Shown piece by piece: positions 6,612 to 17,569 of a stretch of 64,000 bases of DNA. Below the pieces are notes generated by a model. That model was not told the origin of the DNA and did no database searches. It saw nothing but the letters and a program-made list of their open reading frames with translations. The translations under genes and the position numbers were made by a program. The stretch's first letter is position 1, and each line of letters starts with the position of its first letter. The DNA lies in the IMG/VR virus record IMGVR_UViG_3300027621_000003, positions 124,001 to 188,000 of that record; one strand, written 5' to 3'.

Positions 6612-6688
6612 TGGTGGACCCTGTAGGGCTTGAACCTACGACCTACTGATTATGAGTCAGCCGCTCTGACCAACTGAGCTAAGGGTCC
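6612..6688 (-). tRNA. tRNA-Ile2 (CAU, lysidine type)
   Basis: GGACCCT...CTGACTCATAATCAG...GGGTCCACCA; Ile2-type body, encoded CCA. Confidence 0.8.
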
Positions 6689-6717
6689 ATTGTTATACAA
6701 AGATAATAAAAAAATTC

Positions 6718-7140
6718 TTAATCCCACCAATGTTCAATTTTTTGTTCAAGAATTTTAAATAATAAACGTTTAGCTTTATTGTGCTTATCTGTTACCATTT
6801 TAAGAGCTTCAGATGACCGTTTATCTAACTCATAAAACCCATCATAATATGATTCATTTTGTATTTTATCAATTAACCTAACACAAGTCATCATTAACTC
6901 AGCATCACGTTCAGAACTTTCATGAGAACCATATTTAACAAGATGTTTGGCTTGTTTTTCTAACTTGAATTTTAATACCTGAAAAACATAATGGTGGTCC
7001 CAATCCCTATCTTTCCATATTATCCAAAACCATTTATATAGGTTCTGAACTCCATACTTAATGTATTTGTGTTGGTTGGGTAGTTCCCATCTTACCCATC
7101 TGTAAAGTTTCCAATACCATTCGTTATATTCTGTGTTCAT
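6718..7140 (-). CDS. hypothetical phage protein (Trp-rich, DRDWD motif)
   Basis: 140-aa ORF inside tRNA operon 1. Confidence 0.6.
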   Translation of the reverse strand: MNTEYNEWYWKLYRWVRWELPNQHKYIKYGVQNLYKWFWIIWKDRDWDHHYVFQVLKFKLEKQAKHLVKYGSHESSERDAELMMTCVRLIDKIQNESYYDGFYELDKRSSEALKMVTDKHNKAKRLLFKILEQKIEHWWD

Positions 7141-7154
7141 AGTTATGATTTTAG

Positions 7155-7228
7155 TAGACGAGAAGGGACTTGAACCCCCAACCTTGATGATATAAGCATC
7201 CTGCTCTAACCTGTTGAGCTACCCGTCC
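7155..7228 (-). tRNA. tRNA-Ile (UAU)
   Basis: Cloverleaf; anticodon arm GATG-CTTATAT-CATC. Confidence 0.85.
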
Positions 7229-7233
7229 AAATA

Positions 7234-7419
7234 TTAGTTGAAATGAGTACAATCCCCTTGAGTATTATCCCACGGGCATATGTACATTTCTGGTTGGGTA
7301 TGTATGTAAACTCCATCAACACCAAAGTTGTCATTTTCACCATACAACCCAAGTGACTGACTTAATTCTGTCAATTCGGTTAAAAAATCTTCCTGCGTCA
7401 TTTGAGTCTTGGGGTCCAT
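7234..7419 (-). CDS. hypothetical protein
   Basis: 61-aa ORF between tRNAs. Confidence 0.45.
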   Translation of the reverse strand: MDPKTQMTQEDFLTELTELSQSLGLYGENDNFGVDGVYIHTQPEMYICPWDNTQGDCTHFN

Positions 7420-7432
7420 GATTATTGTGTTT

Positions 7433-7509
7433 TGGAGCCTGAAGACGGACTCGAACCGCCAACCCCCTGATTACAAGTCAGGTGCTCTACCAATTAAAGC
7501 TATTCAGGC
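7433..7509 (-). tRNA. tRNA-Thr (UGU)
   Basis: CCTGA-CTTGTAA-TCAGG; CCA encoded. Confidence 0.9.
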
Positions 7510-7528
7510 ATTTATGTTTTAATATATA

Positions 7529-7816
7529 TTACTTTCCTTGTTTTTTGTAAACATAAGTGATGGTATCACCAATGTTGTACTTCCTCAAAGAAGTAAACTC
7601 ACTGCTGTCTGACATGAAATACTTGTACTTCCTGTCAAGTTCAATTGTGCTGTGAGGTGGCAATTGAACCATTGAATCAATAACGAACTTTTCAACTACA
7701 TCACCTTTTTCAATCAAAGGTTTCTGTTTACAAGCTCCTAACATAGTGGCAAGAATAATAGATAAAATAATCCATAAGGAAAAATAAAGTCGGGGGTCTT
7801 TTAATATGTTTTTCAT
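7529..7816 (-). CDS. putative membrane/lipoprotein
   Basis: TM followed by LGAC; start placed after TACCTTTG promoter. Confidence 0.55.
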   Translation of the reverse strand: MKNILKDPRLYFSLWIILSIILATMLGACKQKPLIEKGDVVEKFVIDSMVQLPPHSTIELDRKYKYFMSDSSEFTSLRKYNIGDTITYVYKKQGK

Positions 7817-7817
7817 G

Positions 7818-8369
7818 TTACAAAGGTAATATATTTTTTTCAAAGTTTTTTACATAATTGTCAACTATGTGTTGAATTTCATTTTGATATCTACTATGAA
7901 CATACTGATGATGTGTTGGACATAATGGTACCAAGTTTTTTGGTTCGTTATTTTGGTGATTATTGTCATAATGATGGATAGTCACAATTTTATTTTCACT
8001 ACAAATAATACATTCTTTTTTGTGATAATTAAAACCAATTCTTCTATAACCGTTACGTTCTTGACTATCACCAAAATTTCCCCAATTTGGGTTATTTTCA
8101 CCACTTCTAAAAAAGGTGTTTGAACAAGAATAAGAACATGTTGTTCTTTCTTCTTTCCCTCCAACTTTTGTTTCAAATTGAATATCACAAACAGGACACA
8201 ATTTAATAACTGATTGGTATTTTATTTCTCGACTTCTTAAATGCGAAACGTCAATTTTATTTTCAACAATGAAATTTTCAAATTTTTTTCGAGTTTTTCC
8301 ATTGTCAAAACCATAGAGTTTTTTAATAGCTTCAGCCCTTGTCTTAGAATTTTTAATTATTTCTACCAT
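7818..8369 (-). CDS. HNH homing endonuclease
   Basis: CPVC/CSYSC zinc motifs and CIIC...IHHYD.NH.NN..NL..LCPTHH. Confidence 0.8.
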   Translation of the reverse strand: MVEIIKNSKTRAEAIKKLYGFDNGKTRKKFENFIVENKIDVSHLRSREIKYQSVIKLCPVCDIQFETKVGGKEERTTCSYSCSNTFFRSGENNPNWGNFGDSQERNGYRRIGFNYHKKECIICSENKIVTIHHYDNNHQNNEPKNLVPLCPTHHQYVHSRYQNEIQHIVDNYVKNFEKNILPL

Positions 8370-8431
8370 ATATAATAAATATATTGATTGTCGTTAAAAT
8401 TAGATTTGGTCAAATATTTTTTTAACGATTG

Positions 8432-8507
8432 TAGCGTAGACTGGATTCGAACCAGCGTGCCTCTGCTCCCAAAGCAGATGAGATAAACCTGACTCCTCTA
8501 CTACGCT
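8432..8507 (-). tRNA. tRNA-Pro (UGG)
   Basis: TCTGC-TTTGGGA-GCAGA. Confidence 0.85.
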
Positions 8508-8516
8508 ATTTGTTTG

Positions 8517-8586
8517 TGGACACTGTGGGAATCGAACCCATACGTTCTGATTGCAAATCAAACGGTCTGCCGTTGACATCAGGCCC
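8517..8586 (-). tRNA. tRNA-Ala (UGC), atypical
   Basis: TTTGA-TTTGCAA-TCAGA with G3:U70; irregular acceptor and D arms. Confidence 0.65.
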
Positions 8587-8597
8587 TTTTATTTTTG

Positions 8598-8669
8598 CGG
8601 TCCCACCGGGAATCGAACCCGGCACTTTGCCGTGACAGGGCAATATTATAGCCGATTAACTACAGGACC
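8598..8669 (-). tRNA. tRNA-Asp (GUC)
   Basis: TTGCC-CTGTCAC-GGCAA. Confidence 0.9.
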
Positions 8670-8737
8670 GTAAGTTAGTAAACCCGGGCCCAACAAGCCG
8701 TGATAAACACGGAAGGGCCCTTTTTAAGATTTACTTT

Positions 8738-8813
8738 TGGAGCGAGAGACCAGGTTCGAACTGGCGACCCTCAGTTTGGTAAACTGATGCTCTACCGACT
8801 GAGCTACTCTCGC
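8738..8813 (-). tRNA. tRNA-Gly (ACC)
   Basis: GCGAGAG acceptor, U73, CCA; anticodon arm TCAGT-TTACCAA-ACTGA. Confidence 0.85.
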
Positions 8814-8818
8814 TTTTG

Positions 8819-8890
8819 AGCGAGTGGGGAGAATCGAACTCCCATATCCAGCTTGGAAGGCTGGAGTAATAGCCTTTATACTACACTCGC
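8819..8890 (-). tRNA. tRNA-Gly (UCC)
   Basis: CCAGC-CTTCCAA-GCTGG. Confidence 0.9.
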
Positions 8891-8982
8891 TTTTTTCGAG
8901 TCAGAGTAGTCACGGCCACCTCTTATCCTTCTGACTCTTGATGTAAAAGTGGCCAATGTGGCACGACCCAAGTTACATCCAT

Positions 8983-9056
8983 TGGTTGCGGACCCGAGAC
9001 TCGAACTCGGAACTATGGGTTATGAGCCCATTATGTTACCATTACACCAACCCGCG
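8983..9056 (-). tRNA. initiator tRNA-fMet (CAU)
   Basis: C1:A72 mismatch, three G-C pairs in anticodon stem, CCA. Confidence 0.9.
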
Positions 9057-9065
9057 ATTTATTTG

Positions 9066-9137
9066 TACTCGGTAGGGGAGTCGAACCCCTCTTTCCAGGA
9101 TGAAAACCTGGCATCCTAACCGATAGATGAACCGAGC
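9066..9137 (-). tRNA. tRNA-Glu (UUC)
   Basis: CCAGG-TTTTCAT-CCTGG. Confidence 0.9.
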
Positions 9138-9150
9138 AATTATTTTTTTC

Positions 9151-9171
9151 TTACCAATACGTCAAAGAACT
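9151..9171 (-). promoter_or_regulatory. boxA-like antitermination element
   Basis: AGTTCTTTGACGTATTGGTAA, identical to 16088..16108, directly upstream of the first tRNA. Confidence 0.7.
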
Positions 9172-9242
9172 TTTTTGTTCTGTTGTCTTATTCAACAACA
9201 ATACAAAGTTAATACATTTTTTTAATACTACCAAACAAACAC

Positions 9243-9274
9243 AAAAAAAACCCATCCTTTCGAGATGGGTTTTT
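9243..9274 (-). terminator. attenuator terminator of tRNA operon 1
   Basis: AAAAACCCATC-TCGAAAG-GATGGGTTTTTTTT. Confidence 0.8.
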
Positions 9275-9295
9275 GTAAGATATTTTTTTACAATA

Positions 9296-9364
9296 TTATC
9301 CCATCTCCACTTTGGAAGTATCAGCCTCTGTTGCTGGTGTGCCGAATATGAATATGGTTTTCAT
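9296..9364 (-). CDS. leader peptide of tRNA operon 1 (22 aa, MKTIFIFGTPATEADTSKVEMG)
   Basis: Hand-translated; last codons GAGATGGG are complementary to the terminator 5' arm. Confidence 0.7.
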   Translation of the reverse strand: MKTIFIFGTPATEADTSKVEMG

Positions 9365-9421
9365 TGAATGTATTATTATTTGATTTCTTATTAAATATAA
9401 TAAACTTTTAAAAAGTGTCAA

Positions 9422-10690
9422 TTAAAACGCCAAAGAATTTACATAACTTACCGATTTTTGTACAGACTTTTCAATTGTTTTAATAATTGAGTCCAAATTT
9501 AACTCGGCAACATTACCAATTGAGATTCTAAACCATCCTTTGTTACTCTTTGAACCAAAATATTCAAACGGAACAATTCCCAACCCACAGGTATTAATTA
9601 AGAACGAAATATACTCTTCTGTGGATGAAAATGAATGAACATAACCCAAGTAAACCGAAATATAAATTCCACCATCAGGTTTTTGGTAATCAACATTATG
9701 ACCTTTGTTTTTCAATTCTTCCAACTTGTCACAGATTTTATCTGATATAAATTCATACGATTTTGTTACATAGTTTATGTGAGAAATGTAATCTTCATAA
9801 TCTACTCTGATGTACGCATCCAATGCTCGTTGTTCAGGTTTTGGTGCCCATGCTCCAATGTGAGACAAAACTTCGGTTATCTTTCCAATAATATCTTTTG
9901 GACCAAACAACCAACCAACACGAACACCAGTTGCGTTTAATGATTTTGAAATACCATCAGCACAAATCAAATAATCTCTGATTTCAGGACATAAAGTTAA
10001 TGGGTGGATAAACAAACCTTCTTTGGTGATGTCAGAATAAATCTGGTCAAAGAACAAATACAATGGTCTTGAACCTACTTGTGTTGACCTGATTTTATTT
10101 TCTCTCACAATCAACTCACAAATACCTTTCAGAACTTCGGGGTCAATTACACGACCTGTTGGATTTTGTGGCGAACAAATGCAAACCAATGATGTTTTAT
10201 CACTTATTCTACCGTCAACATCTTCAACGGTTGGAAAAAATGAATTTTCAGGTGTACATTCAATTTCTTCTTTTTGTGCATTATGTAAAAAACAATAGTG
10301 GTTATTATTCCAAGATGGTACAGGATAAATCACCTCTTCATTCGGATTTACCGTGGCTTTATAAACCGTATAAATCAATGGACGAACTCCACCACCAATT
10401 AAGATTTCTTCAGGTGAATAATCAACATTGAACTGATGTTTAATGTGTTTGGAAACAGATTCCCTTAATTCAAGTTCTCCTTGTGAGTTTGGATAGTTGG
10501 TTAAATCCCACTCGTAAGCATCTTGAATGTGTTTTCTTAATTTTGAGGGTATTGGCCATAGTTTGGAATTAAAGTCACCTATGGTTAGGTTAGATACTGG
10601 TTTTGTTTTAGCAATTTCTTTGATTTGTTGTGAGATTTTAATAATTTCAGAGCCAACAATATTGTTCCCTACATTTGATAATTTTTCCAT
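9422..10690 (-). CDS. class I/II PLP-dependent (aspartate-type) aminotransferase
   Basis: SPQNPTG, DQIY, GISKSLNATGVRVGW (PLP lysine) and WFRIS motifs. Confidence 0.9.
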   Translation of the reverse strand: MEKLSNVGNNIVGSEIIKISQQIKEIAKTKPVSNLTIGDFNSKLWPIPSKLRKHIQDAYEWDLTNYPNSQGELELRESVSKHIKHQFNVDYSPEEILIGGGVRPLIYTVYKATVNPNEEVIYPVPSWNNNHYCFLHNAQKEEIECTPENSFFPTVEDVDGRISDKTSLVCICSPQNPTGRVIDPEVLKGICELIVRENKIRSTQVGSRPLYLFFDQIYSDITKEGLFIHPLTLCPEIRDYLICADGISKSLNATGVRVGWLFGPKDIIGKITEVLSHIGAWAPKPEQRALDAYIRVDYEDYISHINYVTKSYEFISDKICDKLEELKNKGHNVDYQKPDGGIYISVYLGYVHSFSSTEEYISFLINTCGLGIVPFEYFGSKSNKGWFRISIGNVAELNLDSIIKTIEKSVQKSVSYVNSLAF

Positions 10691-10718
10691 TATCAAAAGT
10701 ATAAGACACTAATAAGAA

Positions 10719-12278
10719 TTATTCAAATATTTTACTATAAAATTTGTCAAAGTTTGGTCCTTTAACCAAACCACTTTTTCCTTGTCTGGCACTAATACCT
10801 GCCATATTTGACGCCGAAAAGAAACTACTATATTGACCAGGACCACTTCTTCTACCTATTTGAGTTAAAAATTCGTTCTTATTACCGACCTTACCTTCAG
10901 GAATGTTTTTAAGATATTCCATAAATGCTTTGGTTAACGCACCTTTACCTGTGAAGGTGTATTTTGACCTGGTATAAGTCTTAGACTTTGTTGGTGGATA
11001 CCTATCTAACAAGAATTCATCTTCACTAAGTTCTTTGTATATTGTATAATAAAATTCTTTATACAAATTATCTAATAAATTACTAGTTCTTCTTAAAACG
11101 TGTTCAGGGTCACTCTGTCTATCCTCATCCAATATTAAAGTTTTAGTATAGGTTGATTTTTTAACAATATTTTGGTCCGTATTATATGGTATTATCTCAG
11201 CGTCAAATCTAACGATGTGTTTTCCTATCATTACTTGAGTATTATAAACCTTAAAATAACAATCAATAACGCCATCTTCACTATAAGAAGTTTTTCCTTC
11301 TTTATCAATTTCTACAACCTCCCAAGGCGTACTAATTCTAATACTCGTATTATCTCTATCACTATCTTCAACGCTTGGTCTTCCAATATAAAACTTTAAT
11401 TTCCCACCTTTGAATTGGTATATCTCATTGTGGCTTGTAGTAACTTTTGGTATTATTTTATAAATAACATCCAAGACATCTTCTTTAGGGAATGATGTTT
11501 TATAGTCATTAACCATTGAATTATACGCATCTTTTGGCATATGAGCCAATACTGATTCTTTTTCTCTTGATGTCAATCTTTCGTCAGTTGAATCGTACCA
11601 AATTGAATCTGAATCAAATTTTCCATTCTTTGGTGCGTGAATGGCCATTTTGTAAAATTTATTATCCCTGTCAACATTTTTTAATATTAAATAATACAAG
11701 TTTCCATTTGAACTATATTGATTGAAATACGATGGATTACCTTTCATTGTTGTACACCATCTTGTACCTGAACCATAATAACAAGATGCGGTAAATGATT
11801 TTGGTTTTATAACCAACAACGTATCGTTTTCAAAAATTTTATCTATTTCTTTCTTGGCTAATTTTTCTGTCTGTTTGGTCTCAACGTCAGTTTTAATCTT
11901 TTGAGCTTCATTGAAAAAATCTTGTATATTTGTACTGTATTGTCTAAACTCAGGATATTTGAATTTTGATTTGTGTTTTTCAAATGTATCTAAAGAAGCA
12001 ACAATCTTGTCAATTTCACTCCTCATTCTAAATATTAGAGTTCTTGCTCTGTCTTTGTCTAAAGGCTCAGCTTCACCTGAATAATAATTTACGGTATAAT
12101 AATAATCCAAAATATCATTAAGATATTTGTAATTAGTCTCTTTTATAAAAGGTTCACCAATTAAAAAATCATACGCAGACGCATCATCCATGTAAGTGGA
12201 TATCATCTTTCTTTCACCATCAATACTTTTTTGGAATTTCTTAAATGAGTCTTCCTTACGACCTTCAAATAAAATCAT
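10719..12278 (-). CDS. ASCYYGSGTRWCT-domain protein, paralog 2
   Basis: 519 aa; shares the domain and the LFEGRKEDS N-terminus with 625..2418. Confidence 0.6.
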   Translation of the reverse strand: MILFEGRKEDSFKKFQKSIDGERKMISTYMDDASAYDFLIGEPFIKETNYKYLNDILDYYYTVNYYSGEAEPLDKDRARTLIFRMRSEIDKIVASLDTFEKHKSKFKYPEFRQYSTNIQDFFNEAQKIKTDVETKQTEKLAKKEIDKIFENDTLLVIKPKSFTASCYYGSGTRWCTTMKGNPSYFNQYSSNGNLYYLILKNVDRDNKFYKMAIHAPKNGKFDSDSIWYDSTDERLTSREKESVLAHMPKDAYNSMVNDYKTSFPKEDVLDVIYKIIPKVTTSHNEIYQFKGGKLKFYIGRPSVEDSDRDNTSIRISTPWEVVEIDKEGKTSYSEDGVIDCYFKVYNTQVMIGKHIVRFDAEIIPYNTDQNIVKKSTYTKTLILDEDRQSDPEHVLRRTSNLLDNLYKEFYYTIYKELSEDEFLLDRYPPTKSKTYTRSKYTFTGKGALTKAFMEYLKNIPEGKVGNKNEFLTQIGRRSGPGQYSSFFSASNMAGISARQGKSGLVKGPNFDKFYSKIFE

Positions 12279-12307
12279 ATATATAAATACTCACAATTAT
12301 GTATTTG

Positions 12308-12381
12308 TAGCGAGGGAGGGAATTGAACCCCCCACCTCAGGGTTATGAATCCTGCGCTCTAACCGACTGAGCTACCTCGCC
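12308..12381 (-). tRNA. elongator tRNA-Met (CAU)
   Basis: GGCGAGG...CAGGATTCATAACCCTG. Confidence 0.85.
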
Positions 12382-12385
12382 ATGA

Positions 12386-12997
12386 TTATTCTATGGTTTC
12401 ACCATCCAATGTATAAATCATACATGAGGATGATTTCCCTGAATTATCCAAACAATCTTCAATTTCTAATGGTTGTCCTTTAAAAAAGACTTGACCGATA
12501 AAATCATAATCACCTTCTGGTGTTCCTATTGAACCTGATGAGTACGTAAAATCTGTCGGAGTTGGTACTGTGTCAGACTCAAGTGAAAATTTAAACATTC
12601 CACCTTTGTTTTCATCAATACTCAAATAGACATTTGTTGGTCCTTCTTTTTGAGGAAACGCATTATACTCTCTGTACTCATACTTTTCTTCAAAATCTTC
12701 AATTGTTTCGTATAAGTCGGCGGTTTCATCAATACCAAACTCTAATACTTTATTTTCTTCTTCATCAAGAAGTTCAAAGTGCATTGTACCATTGTCAAAC
12801 GCTTCGGTTTTGTGAAAGATTTCACCGTCCCAAAAATCAAGGTCCAAAAGTTCATCTAAATCAAAACGGATTTCATGAAGTTCAGAAAAACCTTCCTCTT
12901 CCATTTTATCTTTAATAATTTGTATTTGTTCGTCAGTTAGAGATTTGCAGACTGCCTCAAAAGACCATCCATAAGTGTTAAGTGTGTATTTAGCCAT
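12386..12997 (-). CDS. hypothetical acidic protein
   Basis: 203-aa ORF with TATATTTG promoter. Confidence 0.6.
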   Translation of the reverse strand: MAKYTLNTYGWSFEAVCKSLTDEQIQIIKDKMEEEGFSELHEIRFDLDELLDLDFWDGEIFHKTEAFDNGTMHFELLDEEENKVLEFGIDETADLYETIEDFEEKYEYREYNAFPQKEGPTNVYLSIDENKGGMFKFSLESDTVPTPTDFTYSSGSIGTPEGDYDFIGQVFFKGQPLEIEDCLDNSGKSSSCMIYTLDGETIE

Positions 12998-13032
12998 ACG
13001 GCAAATATAAATTATAAACCGTGATTCGTCAA

Positions 13033-13470
13033 TTATTTTAAGAATCTTAATTTGTATAATGTTGAGTAAATCAATTCTTGAACTCCATCAATTTGATTTT
13101 GAATATAAGATTCTTTAACCGATGTCCTATTTTTTTCAATATTTTCATCTAATTCTTTAAAATAAGCTATTACTTGTTCTGTTGATTTGTAATCAACTGT
13201 TTTAATTGTTTTATAACCAGTAATTATTTCGTATTTTCCTTGATAACTTTCAACAATATTATCAACTAACCCATCAATTCCATCATAATATTCTTGTAAA
13301 GCTTTATGTTCAGAAAATGATGATTGTGATTTTGTCTGCCAATGAAAGATATGTACTTGAGACTGTGAATGTAATAATGTTGCAATCATATCAACCACAT
13401 CGGCAGTTTCAGTTGCAGGATTTGATTTTGATGATAAACCATTTAAAAGGTCTCTTTTTGTAATTTCCAT
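13033..13470 (-). CDS. ferritin/Dps-like four-helix protein
   Basis: HIFHW...EHKALQEYYD...VD..VE pattern. Confidence 0.6.
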   Translation of the reverse strand: MEITKRDLLNGLSSKSNPATETADVVDMIATLLHSQSQVHIFHWQTKSQSSFSEHKALQEYYDGIDGLVDNIVESYQGKYEIITGYKTIKTVDYKSTEQVIAYFKELDENIEKNRTSVKESYIQNQIDGVQELIYSTLYKLRFLK

Positions 13471-13491
13471 ATCAATAAATATACTGATGTG

Positions 13492-14175
13492 TTAATATGT
13501 CTTAAACTTCATTTCTTTGATAACACAATTTCCAATTTTTTTATGTCCTGATGGTGCCATATGACAAAGTCCATCCCAACAATCCGATTTTGTAATCACA
13601 CGAGTATTAATCACTTTTCCACCAACAATTTTTTTTATCAATTCATTCTGAAATTTGGAATACTTAACTCTGTAGTTTGGATTTTCTGGTGTGTTGATGC
13701 AAATTAATGGGTCAAATCCGGTAATTACAACTGGTTTAACACCTTTGGAATTACAAATGTTTACAATTTTTTGAATGTTCTTTACTGCGCTTTCAATGGT
13801 GATTTTGCTGTTATACATATCATTGGCACCTCCATAGATAAAACAATAATCTAAACCATTGTGAATAGATTCTTTTGCTCTTTCTAACATCCAACCTGTG
13901 GTTTTTCCACCAACAGATATGTTATTCATTCTCATTTTTGTTTTGTTGGATAGAGTATATTGCCAACCATTAGGATTTGATGTGTGAGAATCACCAATAA
14001 AAAGAACGTATTTTCCTTTTACATCCACAATTGTGTCTTGTGGTTTAATTTTTACCGTATCAATTTTAACGGTATCTTCAATTTGTTTATTGTTACCCCA
14101 AACTTTCCAACTTGTTATGAATCCTAAAATTGCTATAACAATGACCAAAATAATTGCTTTTACTAAATTTTTCAT
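13492..14175 (-). CDS. SGNH/GDSL hydrolase, membrane-anchored
   Basis: IGDSHT, GG.TT, YGGAND and DGLCH blocks. Confidence 0.85.
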   Translation of the reverse strand: MKNLVKAIILVIVIAILGFITSWKVWGNNKQIEDTVKIDTVKIKPQDTIVDVKGKYVLFIGDSHTSNPNGWQYTLSNKTKMRMNNISVGGKTTGWMLERAKESIHNGLDYCFIYGGANDMYNSKITIESAVKNIQKIVNICNSKGVKPVVITGFDPLICINTPENPNYRVKYSKFQNELIKKIVGGKVINTRVITKSDCWDGLCHMAPSGHKKIGNCVIKEMKFKTY

Positions 14176-14281
14176 ATTTTTTATTAAAAAACACTCTCAA
14201 GCTCTCTACTCCCAGTTCCGAGGAATTGTATCTTACTTAGCCCGTCTCACCACTGTGTGGGTACTTGAGTTTATGTTTTTG

Positions 14282-14359
14282 TAGTCAGGACAGGATTCGA
14301 ACCTGTAACACCGGTTTGACCACTTACGTGGTTGCGTCTATCCATTCCGCCACCTGACT
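14282..14359 (-). ncRNA. tRNA-like RNA (Leu-type body, no canonical anticodon loop)
   Basis: AGTCAGG/CCTGACT acceptor, GGCGGAATGG..AGACGC D arm, TTCGAAT T loop; anticodon arm ACCAC-GTAA-GTGGT. Confidence 0.7.
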
Positions 14360-14436
14360 ATAGTTGTCAGTCTCTCCTGACCGTCACCCCCACTCCGAAG
14401 GTATGAGCCTTCATATGTGATGCTGGGTTAGCTTTG

Positions 14437-14510
14437 TGGTGTGAACGGGAATCGAACCACGTGGCACGTAGGGTTTCAATCTACTGCTCTACCTGCTGAG
14501 CTACCACACC
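14437..14510 (-). tRNA. tRNA-Phe (GAA), second copy
   Basis: GTAGA-TTGAAAC-CCTAC; slightly irregular T stem. Confidence 0.75.
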
Positions 14511-14537
14511 ATTATTGTTATACAAAGTTAAAATATA

Positions 14538-15014
14538 TTATCCAATTTTCCAAGCTCCAATTATGTGTTTTTTTATTTTTTTACCGTCCTCAGGGTTACC
14601 AATAACAACACCATCTTTAATGGTAAATGCGTGACCTTTAACAACCACCATGTAAGAACCAACAGGATATTTTTTAATGAACGAAAATGTTGTTGTTGCT
14701 CTTAATTTTTTAACACCTTTAACTACAACATAATACAACATGGTATTGTGTTCCTCAGAAATAATTTGAACGTCTTTACCGTTAATTTGTTTACCATTCT
14801 TTGATAACAAATTCATGCCAGTACCAAGTAAAAAAGTACCTTTACCATTTTTTCTCTTGAAAGTTTCTTTAACAAATTGGTGGGCGGAATCATAGTCCAT
14901 ATCCGCGGCTGATGCAATTGCCCTAACAACACAATCGTTTTTTTCAGATTTGGCAATTTTTGATTCAGTATATCCTTTGATTGCGTTTGAAGATGATATA
15001 AACCCCTTTTCCAT
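14538..15014 (-). CDS. hypothetical phage protein (NDCVVRA...GHAF motif, possible Cys/His dyad)
   Basis: Start moved to MEKG after TATATTTG promoter. Confidence 0.55.
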   Translation of the reverse strand: MEKGFISSSNAIKGYTESKIAKSEKNDCVVRAIASAADMDYDSAHQFVKETFKRKNGKGTFLLGTGMNLLSKNGKQINGKDVQIISEEHNTMLYYVVVKGVKKLRATTTFSFIKKYPVGSYMVVVKGHAFTIKDGVVIGNPEDGKKIKKHIIGAWKIG

Positions 15015-15060
15015 ACTACAAATATACAACAGGTATTTGACATTACAAAAAAATATTTTG

Positions 15061-15133
15061 CTCCCCGGATAGGATTTGAACCTATGACCTATCGCTTAAC
15101 AGGCGAGTGCTCTAACCACTGAGCTACCGAGGA
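15061..15133 (-). tRNA. tRNA-Asn (GUU)
   Basis: TCGC-CTGTTAA-GCGA. Confidence 0.9.
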
Positions 15134-15139
15134 ATGTTG

Positions 15140-15221
15140 TACCAAAGGTGGGAGTCGAACCCACACGTCTTTAAGACATTAGTTTCTAAGACTAATGCGG
15201 CTACCGTTACGCCACTTTGGT
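15140..15221 (-). tRNA. tRNA-Leu (UAG)
   Basis: TTAGT-CTTAGAA-ACTAA, long variable arm. Confidence 0.9.
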
Positions 15222-15227
15222 ATTTTG

Positions 15228-15298
15228 CGCAAGTGGAAGGACTCGAACCCTCGCCAAAAGTTTTGGAGACCTTTATGCTACCATTACACCACACTTAC
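15228..15298 (-). tRNA. tRNA-Trp (CCA)
   Basis: AAGGT-CTCCAAA-ACTTT, G73. Confidence 0.9.
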
Positions 15299-15305
15299 GT
15301 ATTTG

Positions 15306-15380
15306 TGATTCCTGAGGGACTCGAACCCCCACATCTTCTCGTCCGTAGCGAGATGTTTTATCCAATTAAACTAAGGAACC
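15306..15380 (-). tRNA. tRNA-Arg (ACG)
   Basis: TCTCG-CTACGGA-CGAGA. Confidence 0.9.
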
Positions 15381-15383
15381 ATT

Positions 15384-15458
15384 TGGGGTGACTGATGGGA
15401 TTCGAACCCACGACACTCGGCACCACAAGCCGATGCTCTACCACTGAACTACAGTCAC
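15384..15458 (-). tRNA. tRNA-His (GUG)
   Basis: TCGGC-TTGTGGT-GCCGA, C73, CCA; G-1 not encoded. Confidence 0.9.
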
Positions 15459-15460
15459 AG

Positions 15461-15534
15461 AGTCCATAGTTGGAATCGAACCAACGAATAACAGTTTTGC
15501 AGACTGTCCCTTTGAACCGCTCAGGCATATGGAC
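15461..15534 (-). tRNA. tRNA-Cys (GCA)
   Basis: ACAGT-CTGCAAA-ACTGT, U73. Confidence 0.9.
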
Positions 15535-15542
15535 TTATATTC

Positions 15543-15589
15543 TATAATCCTCCAAATCTAGTAAAAAAAGTGAGTTTTGGAGGATTATA
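15543..15589. repeat. 14-bp inverted repeat hairpin in tRNA spacer
   Basis: tataatcctccaaa ... tttggaggattata. Confidence 0.7.
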
Positions 15590-15596
15590 AGTTTTG

Positions 15597-15678
15597 TGCC
15601 AGCAGTAGGACTCGAACCTACGAACTCAAATGAGAGCGGGTTTACAATCCGCCGCAATTGCCGCTATGCGATACTGGC
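15597..15678 (-). tRNA. tRNA-Tyr (GUA)
   Basis: GCGGA-TTGTAAA-CCCGC, long variable arm. Confidence 0.9.
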
Positions 15679-15685
15679 ATTTTTG

Positions 15686-15758
15686 TCTTTCCTGTTGGAT
15701 TTGAACCAACGACATCTTGGATGTAAGCCAAGTGCTCTTCCAACTGAGCTAAGGAAAG
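15686..15758 (-). tRNA. tRNA-Val (UAC)
   Basis: CTTGG-CTTACAT-CCAAG. Confidence 0.9.
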
Positions 15759-15764
15759 ATATTG

Positions 15765-15838
15765 TGACCCCATCGGGACTCGAACCCGAAACCCCCGTGT
15801 TAAAAGCACGGTGCTCTAGCCAATTGAGCTATAAGGTC
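15765..15838 (-). tRNA. tRNA-Lys (UUU)
   Basis: CCGTG-CTTTTAA-CACGG. Confidence 0.9.
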
Positions 15839-15844
15839 ATATTG

Positions 15845-15915
15845 TTACCCCTGAAGGATTCGAACCTCCACTAAGTGGACCAAAACCACTCGTCCTGCCG
15901 TTAGACGAAAGGGTA
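15845..15915 (-). tRNA. tRNA-Gln (UUG)
   Basis: AGTGG-TTTTGGT-CCACT. Confidence 0.9.
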
Positions 15916-15920
15916 ATTTA

Positions 15921-15997
15921 TGGTTGGTGATACAGGACTTGAACCTGTGACCCCTACGGTATCAGCGTAGTGCTCTAACCAACTGAGCTAATCACCA
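15921..15997 (-). tRNA. tRNA-Ile (GAU)
   Basis: CTACG-CTGATAC-CGTAG, CCA. Confidence 0.9.
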
Positions 15998-16006
15998 ATG
16001 TATTTG

Positions 16007-16079
16007 TGGGGTAGACAGGTATCGAACCTGTTCCTTCGGATTTTCAGTCCGGCGCAATGACCTCATCTGCCACTACCCC
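16007..16079 (-). tRNA. tRNA-Phe (GAA)
   Basis: CGGA-CTGAAAA-TCCG. Confidence 0.85.
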
Positions 16080-16087
16080 ATTTTTGG

Positions 16088-16108
16088 TTACCAATACGTC
16101 AAAGAACT
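16088..16108 (-). promoter_or_regulatory. boxA-like antitermination element
   Basis: Identical 21-mer to 9151..9171. Confidence 0.7.
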
Positions 16109-16109
16109 T

Positions 16110-16146
16110 AAAAACAAAAAAACCCGAACCTTGTGAGTTCGGGTTT
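16110..16146 (-). terminator. attenuator terminator of tRNA operon 2
   Basis: AAACCCGAAC-TCACAAG-GTTCGGGTTTTTTTGTTTTT. Confidence 0.8.
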
Positions 16147-16167
16147 CCTTTTTTAGGCTACTACGTG

Positions 16168-16263
16168 TTAACTTATAACACCCGAACTTGAAAATACGCG
16201 AAGATACCAATTCTGACAGAATTGAATGACATGTTTCACGATTTGTTTATTTACGAGTTTCAT
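16168..16263 (-). CDS. leader peptide of tRNA operon 2 (31 aa, MKLVNKQIVKHVIQFCQNWYLRVFSSSGVIS)
   Basis: Hand-translated; downstream of TATCTTTG promoter; 3' end carries AGTTCGGGT, complementary to the terminator 5' arm. Confidence 0.8.
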   Translation of the reverse strand: MKLVNKQIVKHVIQFCQNWYLRVFSSSGVIS

Positions 16264-16312
16264 TGTGTTTAGTATTAAATATGGTACAAAGATACAAAAG
16301 TTTCTTGATATG

Positions 16313-16573
16313 TTAAATATTTTTTTCGTTTTTATTTTTTAATAACCAGTTGGCTCCGACTACAAACCCTTGTTTCCATTTTGTAATATCATCATCACAC
16401 ATCCCTTCACTGTATTGTTGATATTTGTCATCAGCGCCAATATGAATCATTTGTTGGATTCTTTTTTCTATAAAACCGGGCTTAGTTTCAAACTCAGGTT
16501 CTCCCAATTCAACCATACCATTTTTCCACTTTTTCCAAGTGTCAAAATCTTTTAAATCTTCAATGTTAATCAT
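16313..16573 (-). CDS. hypothetical protein
   Basis: 86-aa ORF. Confidence 0.5.
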   Translation of the reverse strand: MINIEDLKDFDTWKKWKNGMVELGEPEFETKPGFIEKRIQQMIHIGADDKYQQYSEGMCDDDITKWKQGFVVGANWLLKNKNEKNI

Positions 16574-17005: not shown

Positions 17006-17569
17006 TTATAATAAATATTCCAATACTTTTTCTTTTATGCCCGTTTGTTTAATGCCTTCTTTATTTTCGGGTGTTAATACAAAGTTCTTCAATCCCCAAG
17101 TCTTATCGTGCACATCCGTTAATGACATATTCAAATCATCAATTGCCACCCAATGTGTGATTACAGGATTCTGACCAATATATTGCGCAATCTCCAAACT
17201 ACGAGTTTGTTCTAACTCCGATTTGTTGTGCCATGGGAAATCATCATAATCATCATATAAGATAGAATCGGTAAAGGCAATTGGTTTTTTAATAATACCT
17301 TTTGATTCGTAATATTCTCCCATCTCCTCAACTGTCGCCCAATTTTTCCAATCTGAAGATACAACAATTTCGGCACCTGTTTCCTCTAAGATTTCATTAA
17401 GAACTTTAACCGCCTCCTCATCAAAATTATCAAAACGATACTCAACGGGCATACTTAAAGTACTCATAGACAATTTACGTTTACCCCAACTTTTTTGTTT
17501 TTTGAAACGATTACCCCAATTATCAGACAGACATATCACACCATCGTGGTCCAAAAATATAACTTTCAT
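17006..17569 (-). CDS. HAD-superfamily phosphatase (Swiss-army-knife RNA-repair type)
   Basis: MKVIFLDHDGV, IVVSSDW and WVAIDD motifs. Confidence 0.8.
   Translation of the reverse strand: MKVIFLDHDGVICLSDNWGNRFKKQKSWGKRKLSMSTLSMPVEYRFDNFDEEAVKVLNEILEETGAEIVVSSDWKNWATVEEMGEYYESKGIIKKPIAFTDSILYDDYDDFPWHNKSELEQTRSLEIAQYIGQNPVITHWVAIDDLNMSLTDVHDKTWGLKNFVLTPENKEGIKQTGIKEKVLEYLL

Follow-up and report, generated by a model that had tools for sequence, protein, structure and literature searches.

The two tRNA operons of a large, uncultured phage are likely controlled by multivalent ribosome-mediated attenuation followed by Nus/boxA antitermination, although no experimental data are yet available for this model. 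Both operons lie within a 64,000-nucleotide stretch of the IMG/VR record IMGVR_UViG_3300027621_000003, hereafter the window. In this phage and many relatives, each block of tRNA genes appears to have a built-in gauge that switches tRNA production on when the tRNAs of that block run short.

Every tRNA in both window clusters is encoded on the minus strand, and the two clusters share one layout, in which a putative promoter is followed by a short ORF, an antiterminator/terminator switch, an identical 22-nt motif and the first tRNA (Table 1). This anatomy is directly observed, whereas translation of the leader ORFs is inferred.

Table 1 Features of the two tRNA modules in the window.
Feature	Position	Strand	Details
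tRNA operon 1	6612..9137	(-)	Glu, Met(CAU), Gly(UCC), Gly(ACC), Asp, Ala(UGC), Pro, two ORFs including an HNH endonuclease, Thr, Ile(UAU), 140-aa ORF, Met(CAU)
BoxA-type motif, module 1	9151..9172	(-)	same sequence as module 2 copy; 13 nt before tRNA-Glu
Possible second, attenuator-independent promoter, module 1	9204..9235	(-)	-33 TTTG 9235-9232; -7 TAACTTTG 9211-9204; consensus only
Intrinsic terminator (attenuator), module 1	9243..9274	(-)	
Leader ORF 1	9296..9364	(-)	ATG 9364, stop 9296; 22 codons + stop; peptide MKTIFIFGTPATEADTSKVEMG
Antiterminator strand, leader 1	9299..9308	(-)	GGAGATGGGA, adjoins stop codon; duplex -15.3 kcal/mol, z -4.4
Putative leader 1 promoter	9392..9421	(-)	TTGACA 9421-9416; TATATT/TATATTTA 9399-9392; 11/12 match
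tRNA operon 2	14281..16079	(-)	Phe, Ile(GAU), Gln, Lys, Val, Tyr, Cys, His, Arg(ACG), Trp, Leu(UAG), Asn, 163-aa ORF, Phe, odd tRNA-like gene
BoxA-type motif, module 2	16088..16109	(-)	AAGTTCTTTGACGTATTGGTAA; 8 nt before tRNA-Phe
Intrinsic terminator (attenuator), module 2	16116..16150	(-)	15 pairs + T-run
Leader ORF 2	16168..16263	(-)	31 codons + stop; peptide MKLVNKQIVKHVIQFCQNWYLRVFSSSGVIS
Antiterminator strand, leader 2	16179..16189	(-)	AAGTTCGGGTG, 9-19 nt before stop codon; duplex -15.5 kcal/mol, z -3.9
Putative Bacteroidota-type promoter, leader 2	16287..16317	(-)	-7 element TATCTTTG 16294-16287; -33-like TTTA 16317-16314

The codons of each leader match the tRNAs encoded downstream. 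All tRNA types of operon 1 have a codon in leader 1 (8/8, Ala included), and cluster-1 tRNAs read 15 of its 21 codons when Ala is counted. Cluster-2 tRNAs read 24 of the 30 codons of leader 2, in which 12/12 tRNA types are represented. Among 460 ATG-initiated window ORFs of 15-45 aa, leader 1 ranks within the top 0.2% for its fraction of cluster-1 codons (13/21 being the figure used here) and leader 2 within the top 0.4% for coverage (12/12 types); a chance match is therefore unlikely. The tRNA-Ala(UGC) of operon 1 (8517..8586, minus strand) was detected only by Rfam, scoring 29.5 bits where the cut-off is 29, and ARAGORN found no tRNA-Ala; the G3:U70 pair is present.

A preliminary description of the window had proposed that the leaders divide the amino acids as the operons do. 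Its claims that C, H, L, N, Q, R, W and Y are missing from leader 1 and A, D, E, P and T from leader 2, and that Gly in leader 2 is confined to the antiterminator tail all held, the sole Gly codon lying inside AAGTTCGGGTG (16189-16179). The proposed split of Ile by codon also held: leader 1 contains ATA twice and cluster 1 encodes tRNA-Ile(UAU), while the body of leader 2 contains ATC and ATT and cluster 2 encodes tRNA-Ile(GAU). A single ATA codon is present in the leader 2 tail, outside the body. As a correction to that description, leader 1 does carry F (twice), K and V, the corresponding tRNAs of which sit in cluster 2. Coverage of all 20 amino acids was upheld, given the Rfam-only tRNA-Ala. 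The claim that the two modules share no sequence failed, as the exact 22-nt AAGTTCTTTGACGTATTGGTAA follows each terminator.

Related IMG/VR contigs yielded 68 module instances, which group into 16 leader families unrelated in sequence. Several of these families share ancestry and do not represent 16 independent origins. All contigs compared are metagenomic, and no cultured relative was found in INPHARED. Across the 16 families, recall (own-operon tRNA types represented in the leader) was 0.98 against 0.72 for permuted pairings, with a precision of 0.63 against 0.42 and a Jaccard index of 0.54 against 0.35; none of these values was reached in 200,000 permutations (0/200,000). Operons were delimited with a gap rule, and the concordance was robust at 300, 1000 and 5000 nt. 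The other five reading frames and shuffled sequences gave a recall of only 0.58-0.70, the true frame being superior for recall in 15-16 of 16 modules and for precision in 14-16 of 16. Among individual leaders, the body of the L013 leader is built from T, Y, Q, P, E, K and G alone, the seven types of its operon, and the module 2 leader of L130 covers 15/15 tRNA types. These statistics rule out chance ORFs. Precision itself is limited, with leaders also carrying non-operon codons, such as those for F and K in leader 1 and, in other leaders, for T, N or S close to the N-terminus.

The match extends to codon class, where CTN/TTR, CGN/AGR and ATA/ATY can be distinguished. Where tRNA-Leu(UAG) occurs alone, Leu codons are CTN in 6/8 cases, against a background of 25%, and the class matches the tRNA in 5/6 cases for Arg and 15/18 for Ile. 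Leaders also co-vary with their operons. In L117, which has acquired tRNA-Ser(UGA), codon 17 of the leader has switched from CAG to TCG; where an operon encodes both Ser tRNAs, its leader carries TCG as well as AGY, and AGA in a leader co-occurs with tRNA-Arg(UCU). Between close variants, leader bodies show 13 synonymous and 5 non-synonymous changes, where 21% synonymous would be expected at random, and 5/5 of the non-synonymous changes lead to residues served by the operon. Leader tails vary freely.

These observations bear on the possibility that the leaders are functional micropeptides or small-molecule arrest peptides (as TnaC and ErmCL), with the tRNA match secondary. In its favour, the ORFs show conservation within each family and begin with MK or MR, as translated small genes do. 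Against it, no peptide motif is shared among the 16 families, and what is kept within families is composition rather than order (an AV to VA swap; residues reshuffled between L130 and L158), with composition tracking operon content. We regard this explanation as virtually eliminated.

The hardware of an attenuator recurs across the relatives. Leader ORFs of 22-46 codons, each with its own start codon, are found in all 16 families, their translation again being inferred. A TAnnTTT[G/A] element lies 16-61 nt 5' of the ATG in 12/16 families, a range that narrows to 25-53 nt if the strict form TAnnTTTG is required, and a hairpin with a T-run, of -14 to -17 kcal/mol, lies 20-54 nt past the leader stop in 16/16. 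Always shortly before that stop, and mostly 10-30 nt upstream of it, is a strand complementary to the 5' arm of the terminator. This complementarity has a mean z of -2.75 against shuffles over 16 modules with unrelated stems, and reaches p <= 0.023 in 10/16. In leader 2 the strand AAGTTCGGGTG duplicates the 3' arm of the terminator, pairing with its 5' arm; for both window leaders the nascent RNA folds into the antiterminator. The alternative pairings are shown by this analysis, while the direction in which the switch operates is inferred. No T-box or other Rfam leader family was found at gathering score; sub-threshold Thr_leader matches fell on the terminator hairpin (25.7 bits against 55).

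The opposite polarity was also considered. In such an inverted or Rho-based scheme, leader translation would merely couple the ribosome to RNA polymerase and protect it until boxA is made, and stalling would lower tRNA transcription. The presence of boxA implies a Rho threat to these transcripts (PMC4807359), and coupling-based control exists in bacteria. However, every module has a strong intrinsic terminator, and the antiterminator strand sits where a terminating ribosome would mask it, a geometry in which stalling gives readthrough. We rate an inverted or Rho-based polarity as very improbable.

The 22-nt motif following each terminator can be identified as an rrn-type boxA by sequence identity. 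Its exact 17-mer, GTTCTTTGACGTATTGG, occurs in the 16S-23S spacer of genomes from Fluviicola, Crocinitomicaceae and Cryomorphaceae, where it sits in the usual place of boxA, past the spacer tRNA and 14-42 nt upstream of the 23S 5' end (Rfam-annotated in L251, L256 and L261, with a like context in L257, L310, L311, L334 and L336). The motif resembles the E. coli and Bacillus boxA consensus. BoxA recruits NusB/NusE and shields long non-coding transcripts from Rho (PMC4807359); for the phage copies, both NusB/NusE binding and Rho resistance are inferred. In the phage modules 5-26 nt separate the end of the motif from the 5' end of the mature tRNA, and further copies stand within arrays, 5-10 nt behind the preceding tRNA.

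A deflationary reading would take the leaders as chance ORFs, the hairpins as insulating terminators and the 22-nt motif as the true promoter of the tRNA operon. The motif does hold TTGACG and TTTG, which resemble -35/-33 elements, and in three modules the spacer between terminator and boxA holds a -7-like element. The chance-ORF part is contradicted by the concordance statistics, the co-variation and the excess of synonymous substitutions. As to the promoter part, no TAnnTTTG was found 19-21 nt past the TTTG of the motif, and no -7 element lies at promoter spacing in 13/16 modules. The terminator-boxA spacer is 7-27 nt in these 13/16 modules, and therefore leaves little room for a promoter. 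The short distance from motif to tRNA, the presence of the 17-mer inside rRNA operons and its recurrence behind tRNAs within arrays likewise speak against a promoter, and we consider this reading as good as excluded.

The remaining 3/16 modules, window module 1 among them, have a spacer of 65-72 nt with a -7-like element, which could possibly be a second promoter bypassing the attenuator. Elements equivalent to the candidate in the unusually long spacer of module 1 occur in L121 and L204. In L160 and L141, -7-like elements adjoin boxA.

In the attenuation model we favour, transcription would begin at a Bacteroidota-type promoter about 25-50 nt 5' of a leader ORF of 22-36 codons whose body presents one to few codons per downstream tRNA species, and whose last 3-9 codons include the copy of the terminator 3' arm that acts as antiterminator strand. 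An unhindered ribosome would mask this strand as the 5' arm emerges, so that the terminator forms, about 20-38 nt past the stop codon, and transcription stops. Should any needed aminoacyl-tRNA be scarce, the ribosome would stall upstream, the antiterminator would pair with the 5' arm and RNA polymerase would read on. BoxA would then be transcribed and presumably load NusB/NusE and partners, allowing the long untranslated tRNA array to escape Rho termination. The operon products would replenish exactly the tRNAs that the leader samples, closing the loop.

Tandem runs of regulatory codons, which typify his, trp, leu and pheA, are absent from the leaders; the codons are scattered and mostly occur once or twice, with only occasional doublets (DD and EE in L092, QQ in L121/L130). 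Because regulatory codons are few and dispersed, unlike classical tandem runs, sensitivity to any one tRNA may be low. Codons near the antiterminator strand may moreover be badly placed, since a ribosome stalled there would mask the strand.

The physiological trigger, whether host tRNA loss or feedback from phage tRNAs, can only be inferred. The same hardware might answer to another signal, such as general translational capacity, amino-acid starvation (charged fraction) or negative feedback once phage tRNAs accumulate. A stalled ribosome is blind to the difference between a missing and an uncharged tRNA, as in the trp and his attenuators, and products identical to the sampled molecules are a signature of autoregulation. 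On the other hand, extra tRNA cannot relieve amino-acid starvation, making the output poorly matched to a starvation sensor, and codon-class specificity (CTN not TTR with tRNA-Leu(UAG)) indicates tRNA species over amino acids. We hold this alternative to be credible, if not the better bet.

A bolder form of the attenuation model would see the leaders as multiplexed tRNA-pool sensors, an OR-gate over up to 15 species that detects host tRNA loss during infection and switches on the exact replacement set, with boxA securing full-length transcription. The loss could stem from anticodon nucleases of the host, from other defences that target tRNAs or from host shut-off induced by the phage. We put this forward tentatively, as less likely than not. 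If true, it would be an inducible counter-defence and a first case of tRNA genes governed by a translated codon ‘checklist’. Measured against these results, the preliminary claim of selected function over chance held, on both the window ranking and the concordance in relatives; the scan it had proposed, for a short ORF, terminator and boxA before tRNA clusters of other phages compared with controls, was strongly positive; and its boxA call held through identity with the Flavobacteriales rRNA spacer boxA. Its reading of a module to sense and replace the host tRNA pool stands as one physiological interpretation among several, the regulation being inferred without experimental data.

Phage tRNAs replace tRNAs lost in infection (PMC12409363), and phage tRNA arrays have been discussed as counter-defence or codon supply, for example in neutralising PARIS or retron tRNA nucleases. 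The replacement role would be alike here, but those studies assume plain expression of the tRNA genes, in contrast to the leader gating inferred for these modules; in the literature searched, we found no prior description of a sensing leader before phage tRNA arrays. As with the boxA of rRNA operons, and the nut boxA of lambda, the phage motif stands ahead of a long untranslated RNA, and its recurrence within arrays parallels that of boxA in rrn spacers. Its position differs, directly behind a conditional terminator in a tRNA operon, with NusB/NusE binding inferred. T-box riboswitches likewise link tRNA status to terminator readthrough with codon-like specificity; they differ in binding one uncharged tRNA directly, without translation, and in controlling synthetase or amino-acid genes.

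The closest parallels are the leader-peptide attenuators of amino-acid operons (ilvGMEDA, ilvBN, thr, trp, his, leu, pheA) and pheST, which likewise combine a promoter, a short leader, an intrinsic terminator and an antiterminator that excludes the terminator and is overlapped by the ORF end. In the amino-acid operons, too, regulatory codons follow what the operon supplies, with several amino acids combined in the ilv and thr leaders; pheST shares the principle of attenuating a component of translation. The phage modules, however, regulate tRNAs rather than enzymes or synthetases, and their leaders sample 7-15 codon types (18 in L038), mostly once, where classical leaders have tandem runs of 1-3 types. 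They are also borne by phages of Bacteroidota and followed by boxA, and the molecules they produce are the very molecules they would sense.

The window contains 28 tRNA genes detectable by ARAGORN, among them two clusters whose upstream regions have the same layout. In the direction of transcription, each cluster is preceded by a promoter-like element, a leader ORF, a hairpin with a T-run and a 22-nt motif, which lies 13 nt (module 1) or 8 nt (module 2) from the first tRNA. The preliminary description held that the two modules have no sequence in common. This did not hold, as both carry the motif, which has no further copy in the 64 kb. The remaining tRNAs (Met 12381, Arg-UCU 20977, Leu-UAA 22111 and Ser 31783/31905) have no leader, terminator or boxA and directly follow protein ORFs.

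Features of the two tRNA modules and neighbouring genes
Feature	Position	Strand	Remark
Cluster 1	tRNA-Glu (9137) to tRNA-Met (6612)	minus	ARAGORN
Cluster 2	tRNA-Phe (16079) to odd tRNA-like gene (14281)	minus	ARAGORN
Leader 1, short ATG-ORF	9364-9296	minus	22 aa
Leader 2, short ATG-ORF	16263-16168	minus	31 aa
Antiterminator strand, leader 1	9308-9299	minus	GGAGATGGGA
Antiterminator strand, leader 2	16189-16179	minus	AAGTTCGGGTG
Strong hairpin then T-run, module 1	9274-9243	minus	
Strong hairpin then T-run, module 2	16150-16116	minus	
22-nt motif, module 1	9172-9151	minus	AAGTTCTTTGACGTATTGGTAA
22-nt motif, module 2	16109-16088	minus	AAGTTCTTTGACGTATTGGTAA, exact copy
tRNA-Ala, cluster 1	8517-8586		Rfam
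tRNA-Gly(ACC)	8738-8813	minus	CCA end encoded
Gap between tRNA-Met and tRNA-Gly(UCC)	8891-8982	minus	92 nt
HNH endonuclease and 104-aa ORF, operon 1	7529-8369	minus	phrog_1271 (HNH)
ORF ahead of last tRNA-Met, operon 1	6718-7140	minus	140 aa
ORF inside operon 2	14538-15029	minus	163 aa, phrog_3754
tRNA-like gene	14281-14359	minus	Rfam tRNA, 41 bits
HAD_SAK_2 ORF	17006-17569	minus	E 3e-20
phrog_17056/phrog_28193 ORF	625-2418	minus	597 aa
phrog_17056/phrog_28193 ORF	10719-12278	minus	519 aa

Each leader contains codons for all the tRNA types that follow it. Leader 1 represents 8/8 tRNA types of cluster 1, and that cluster reads 15 of the leader's 21 codons; for leader 2, the figures are 12/12 types of cluster 2 and 24 of 30 codons read by it. 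Among the 460 ATG-ORFs of 15-45 aa in the window, the fraction of cluster-1 codons places leader 1 in the top 0.2%, and the coverage of cluster-2 types places leader 2 in the top 0.4%. The amino-acid bookkeeping of the preliminary description, in which each leader lacks residues served by the other operon, held for both leaders, with the correction that leader 1 also has F, K and V, tRNAs for which sit in cluster 2. Its claim that all 20 amino acids are covered also held, with Ala supplied by a gene that ARAGORN, which reports no tRNA-Ala in the window, had missed and to which the Ala codons of leader 1 pointed. The Rfam score of this gene is barely above threshold (29.5 versus 29 bits); its anticodon loop contains UGC and it has a G3:U70 pair, a feature typical of tRNA-Ala. 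Cluster 1 therefore holds Ala, completing the set.

Two further features of cluster 1 were noted. One tRNA-Gly carries the anticodon ACC; A34 is unusual outside tRNA-Arg(ACG), and the homologue in two relatives (L195 and L160; L-numbers denote other loci and contigs compared, mostly related IMG/VR phage contigs) has GCC, so the anticodon appears to reflect a recent G34 to A change. The Gly codons of leader 1 are GGC and GGA. In the gap beside tRNA-Gly(UCC) there is a hairpin (GAGTCAGA...TCTGACTC) as well as a weak terminator-like site, but no tRNA; near the matching point of its array, the relative L029 has a second tRNA-Met.

A scan of IMG/VR returned 36 true sites of the motif core, all 36 of them 5-15 nt upstream of a tRNA; many have a terminator upstream and some lie directly behind another tRNA. 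When two neighbouring proteins were used as queries, more than 100 further loci were obtained; they come from a large family of uncultured phages with contigs of 50-300 kb and no cultured relative in INPHARED at the DNA or protein level. Modules were then defined by structure and position alone: a boxA-like motif had to precede a tRNA, a hairpin followed by a T-run had to lie upstream of it, and the leader was taken as the longest ATG-ORF that ends shortly before that hairpin. This gave 68 modules, grouped into 16 leader families whose peptide and stem sequences are unrelated. In L013, the leader body is built from T, Y, Q, P, E, K and G alone, matched by Pro, Gln, Tyr, Glu, Lys, Gly and Thr tRNAs in the operon. 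The leader of L092 contains DD and EE, numerous L and V residues, and also A and W; its operon has tRNAs for Asp (two), Glu (two), Val, Leu (three), Ala (two) and Trp (two). The second leader of L130 covers 15/15 tRNA types. All data are in silico and from metagenomic contigs, and the 16 families are not fully independent.

Concordance was scored as recall (operon tRNA types represented in the leader) and precision (leader codons served by the operon). Across the 16 families, recall was 0.98 for the own operon versus 0.72 for permuted pairings, and precision 0.63 versus 0.42; none of 200,000 permutations matched either observed value. The result was stable under operon gap rules of 300, 1000 and 5000 nt. 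Reading the other five frames, or shuffles of the same nucleotides, lowered recall to 0.58-0.70, and the real frame was best in 15-16 of 16 modules for recall and 14-16 of 16 for precision. A chance origin of the match is ruled out by these permutation, frame and shuffle controls together with the window-wide ORF ranking. Some leader codons have no matching tRNA in the operon.

The match extends to codon class (Arg 5/6, Ile 15/18, Ser 10/14). Where tRNA-Leu(UAG) is the only tRNA-Leu of the operon, leader Leu codons are CTN in 6/8 cases, against a background of 25% of Leu codons in the window's genes. tRNA-Arg(UCU) is accompanied by AGA in the leader, and operons with both Ser tRNAs have leaders with both TCG and AGY. 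In L117, an 86%-identical relative, operon 2 has an extra tRNA-Ser(UGA) and leader codon 17 is TCG instead of CAG. Comparison of close variants gives 13 synonymous against 5 non-synonymous changes in the leader bodies (synonymous share expected from random change, 21%), and all five of the latter, including an AV to VA swap, lead to residues with a tRNA in the operon; codons 2-3 and the tails vary freely. Only well-aligned clusters were counted, L092/L002 and L130/L158 being left out as inflated by indel misregistration. The conserved property is leader composition, not peptide sequence.

In all families, a terminator of -14 to -17 kcal/mol starts 20-54 nt past the leader stop codon, and a strand complementary to its 5' arm lies in the ORF end or adjoining sequence. 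The stems differ from family to family, and the antiterminator complementarity has a mean z of -2.75 against dinucleotide shuffles (p ≤ 0.023 in 10/16 modules). When the RNA is cut at the terminator loop, both window leaders adopt the antiterminator fold. The direction of the switch is inferred from this geometry and from the trp/his/ilv attenuation model, which is established: a ribosome completing the leader ORF would cover the antiterminator strand and let the terminator form, and one stalled earlier would leave that strand free, giving readthrough. Leader translation and the physiological trigger are likewise inferred in silico; host tRNA loss, phage tRNA feedback and starvation each remain possible as triggers, and single dispersed codons may give only weak responses.

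Beyond the terminator lies the 22-nt motif. Its 17-mer core was found mostly in Bacteroidota (one genome per species scanned). In Fluviicola, Crocinitomicaceae and Cryomorphaceae, it sits in the 16S-23S spacer, between the spacer tRNA(s) and the Rfam-annotated 23S 5' end and 14-42 nt upstream of the latter, which is where the spacer boxA is located. A 16S proximity search found no 27F site downstream of the motif, since its counterpart is the spacer boxA ahead of 23S rather than the one ahead of 16S. BoxA recruits NusB/NusE and shields long non-coding transcripts from Rho (PMC4807359). Given this position and function, the motif is best read as a boxA borrowed from host rRNA operons, Nus binding being inferred in silico. 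Its exact identity suggests Flavobacteriales hosts from the Fluviicola/Crocinitomicaceae/Cryomorphaceae families. The alternative of a promoter, whether conventional or for a phage polymerase, is ruled out by its location inside host rRNA operons and directly behind tRNAs, without promoter spacing. BoxA acts on polymerases arriving from upstream, and in agreement with this, 13/16 modules leave little room for a promoter between terminator and boxA. Window module 1, L121 and L204 have a 65-72-nt spacer with a -7-like TAnnTTTG, possibly a second promoter bypassing the attenuator.

Inside arrays, the boxA motif also occurs without a terminator, in which case it lies 5-10 nt behind one tRNA and 5-15 nt ahead of the following one (L099, L103, L093, L061, L073, L018, L030, L035), resembling the repeated boxA of rRNA operons. 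Two short MAG contigs with dense tRNA arrays and boxA between tRNAs (L326, L339) are likely phage contigs binned into bacterial MAGs.

Several other genes accompany the tRNAs. The HNH endonuclease and 104-aa ORF lie between tRNA-Pro and tRNA-Thr; these and the other protein ORFs embedded in the operons would be co-regulated with the tRNAs. The tRNA-like gene ending cluster 2 has a long variable arm and a 5-bp anticodon-arm stem with a 4-nt GUAA loop, and ARAGORN gives it no assignment; a similar place in L195 and L121 holds unassigned tRNAs. Suppressor-type tRNAs occur in the arrays of L038 (leader MKQHSIYNLQ...; anticodon UUA, reading UAA stop) and L018 (two CUA), a hint that some relatives reassign or suppress stop codons. 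About 750 nt upstream of leader 2, the third ORF in that direction has a HAD_SAK_2 domain, which is the HAD domain found in 'Swiss Army Knife' RNA repair proteins, and may link the tRNA region to RNA repair. The 597- and 519-aa ORFs match the same two PHROGs of unknown function and are therefore probably paralogues.

Phage tRNA genes are usually seen as cargo whose expression is passive and which serves to adjust codon supply or to make up for tRNAs that host defences destroy. If multivalent attenuation is correct, phages gauge decoding capacity codon by codon and set tRNA output to match, and leader-peptide control extends beyond amino-acid metabolism to tRNA genes, with up to fifteen amino acids covered instead of one to three. 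The leaders make three questions directly testable: at what point phage tRNAs are needed, how a stall at a single codon is read out, and how a conditional terminator and Nus/boxA antitermination are combined. The genomic rule that leader composition predicts operon content could be used for annotating tRNA operons and finding degenerate tRNAs, and exact boxA identity provides a host-prediction clue for uncultured phages.

Known RNA families (T-box and the Thr/His/Trp/Leu leaders) are ruled out as the identity of these elements, none matching at the Rfam threshold, and the open full text searched, which excludes subscription-only papers, nowhere describes tRNA operons or phage tRNA arrays under leader-peptide control. 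The parts are those of leader-peptide attenuation, and the closest counterparts in logic are the multivalent leaders of ilv and thr and the leader of pheST. The phage modules differ from known attenuators in that they target tRNA genes, carry 7-15 codon types, mostly as single codons, are phage-borne and are coupled to boxA.
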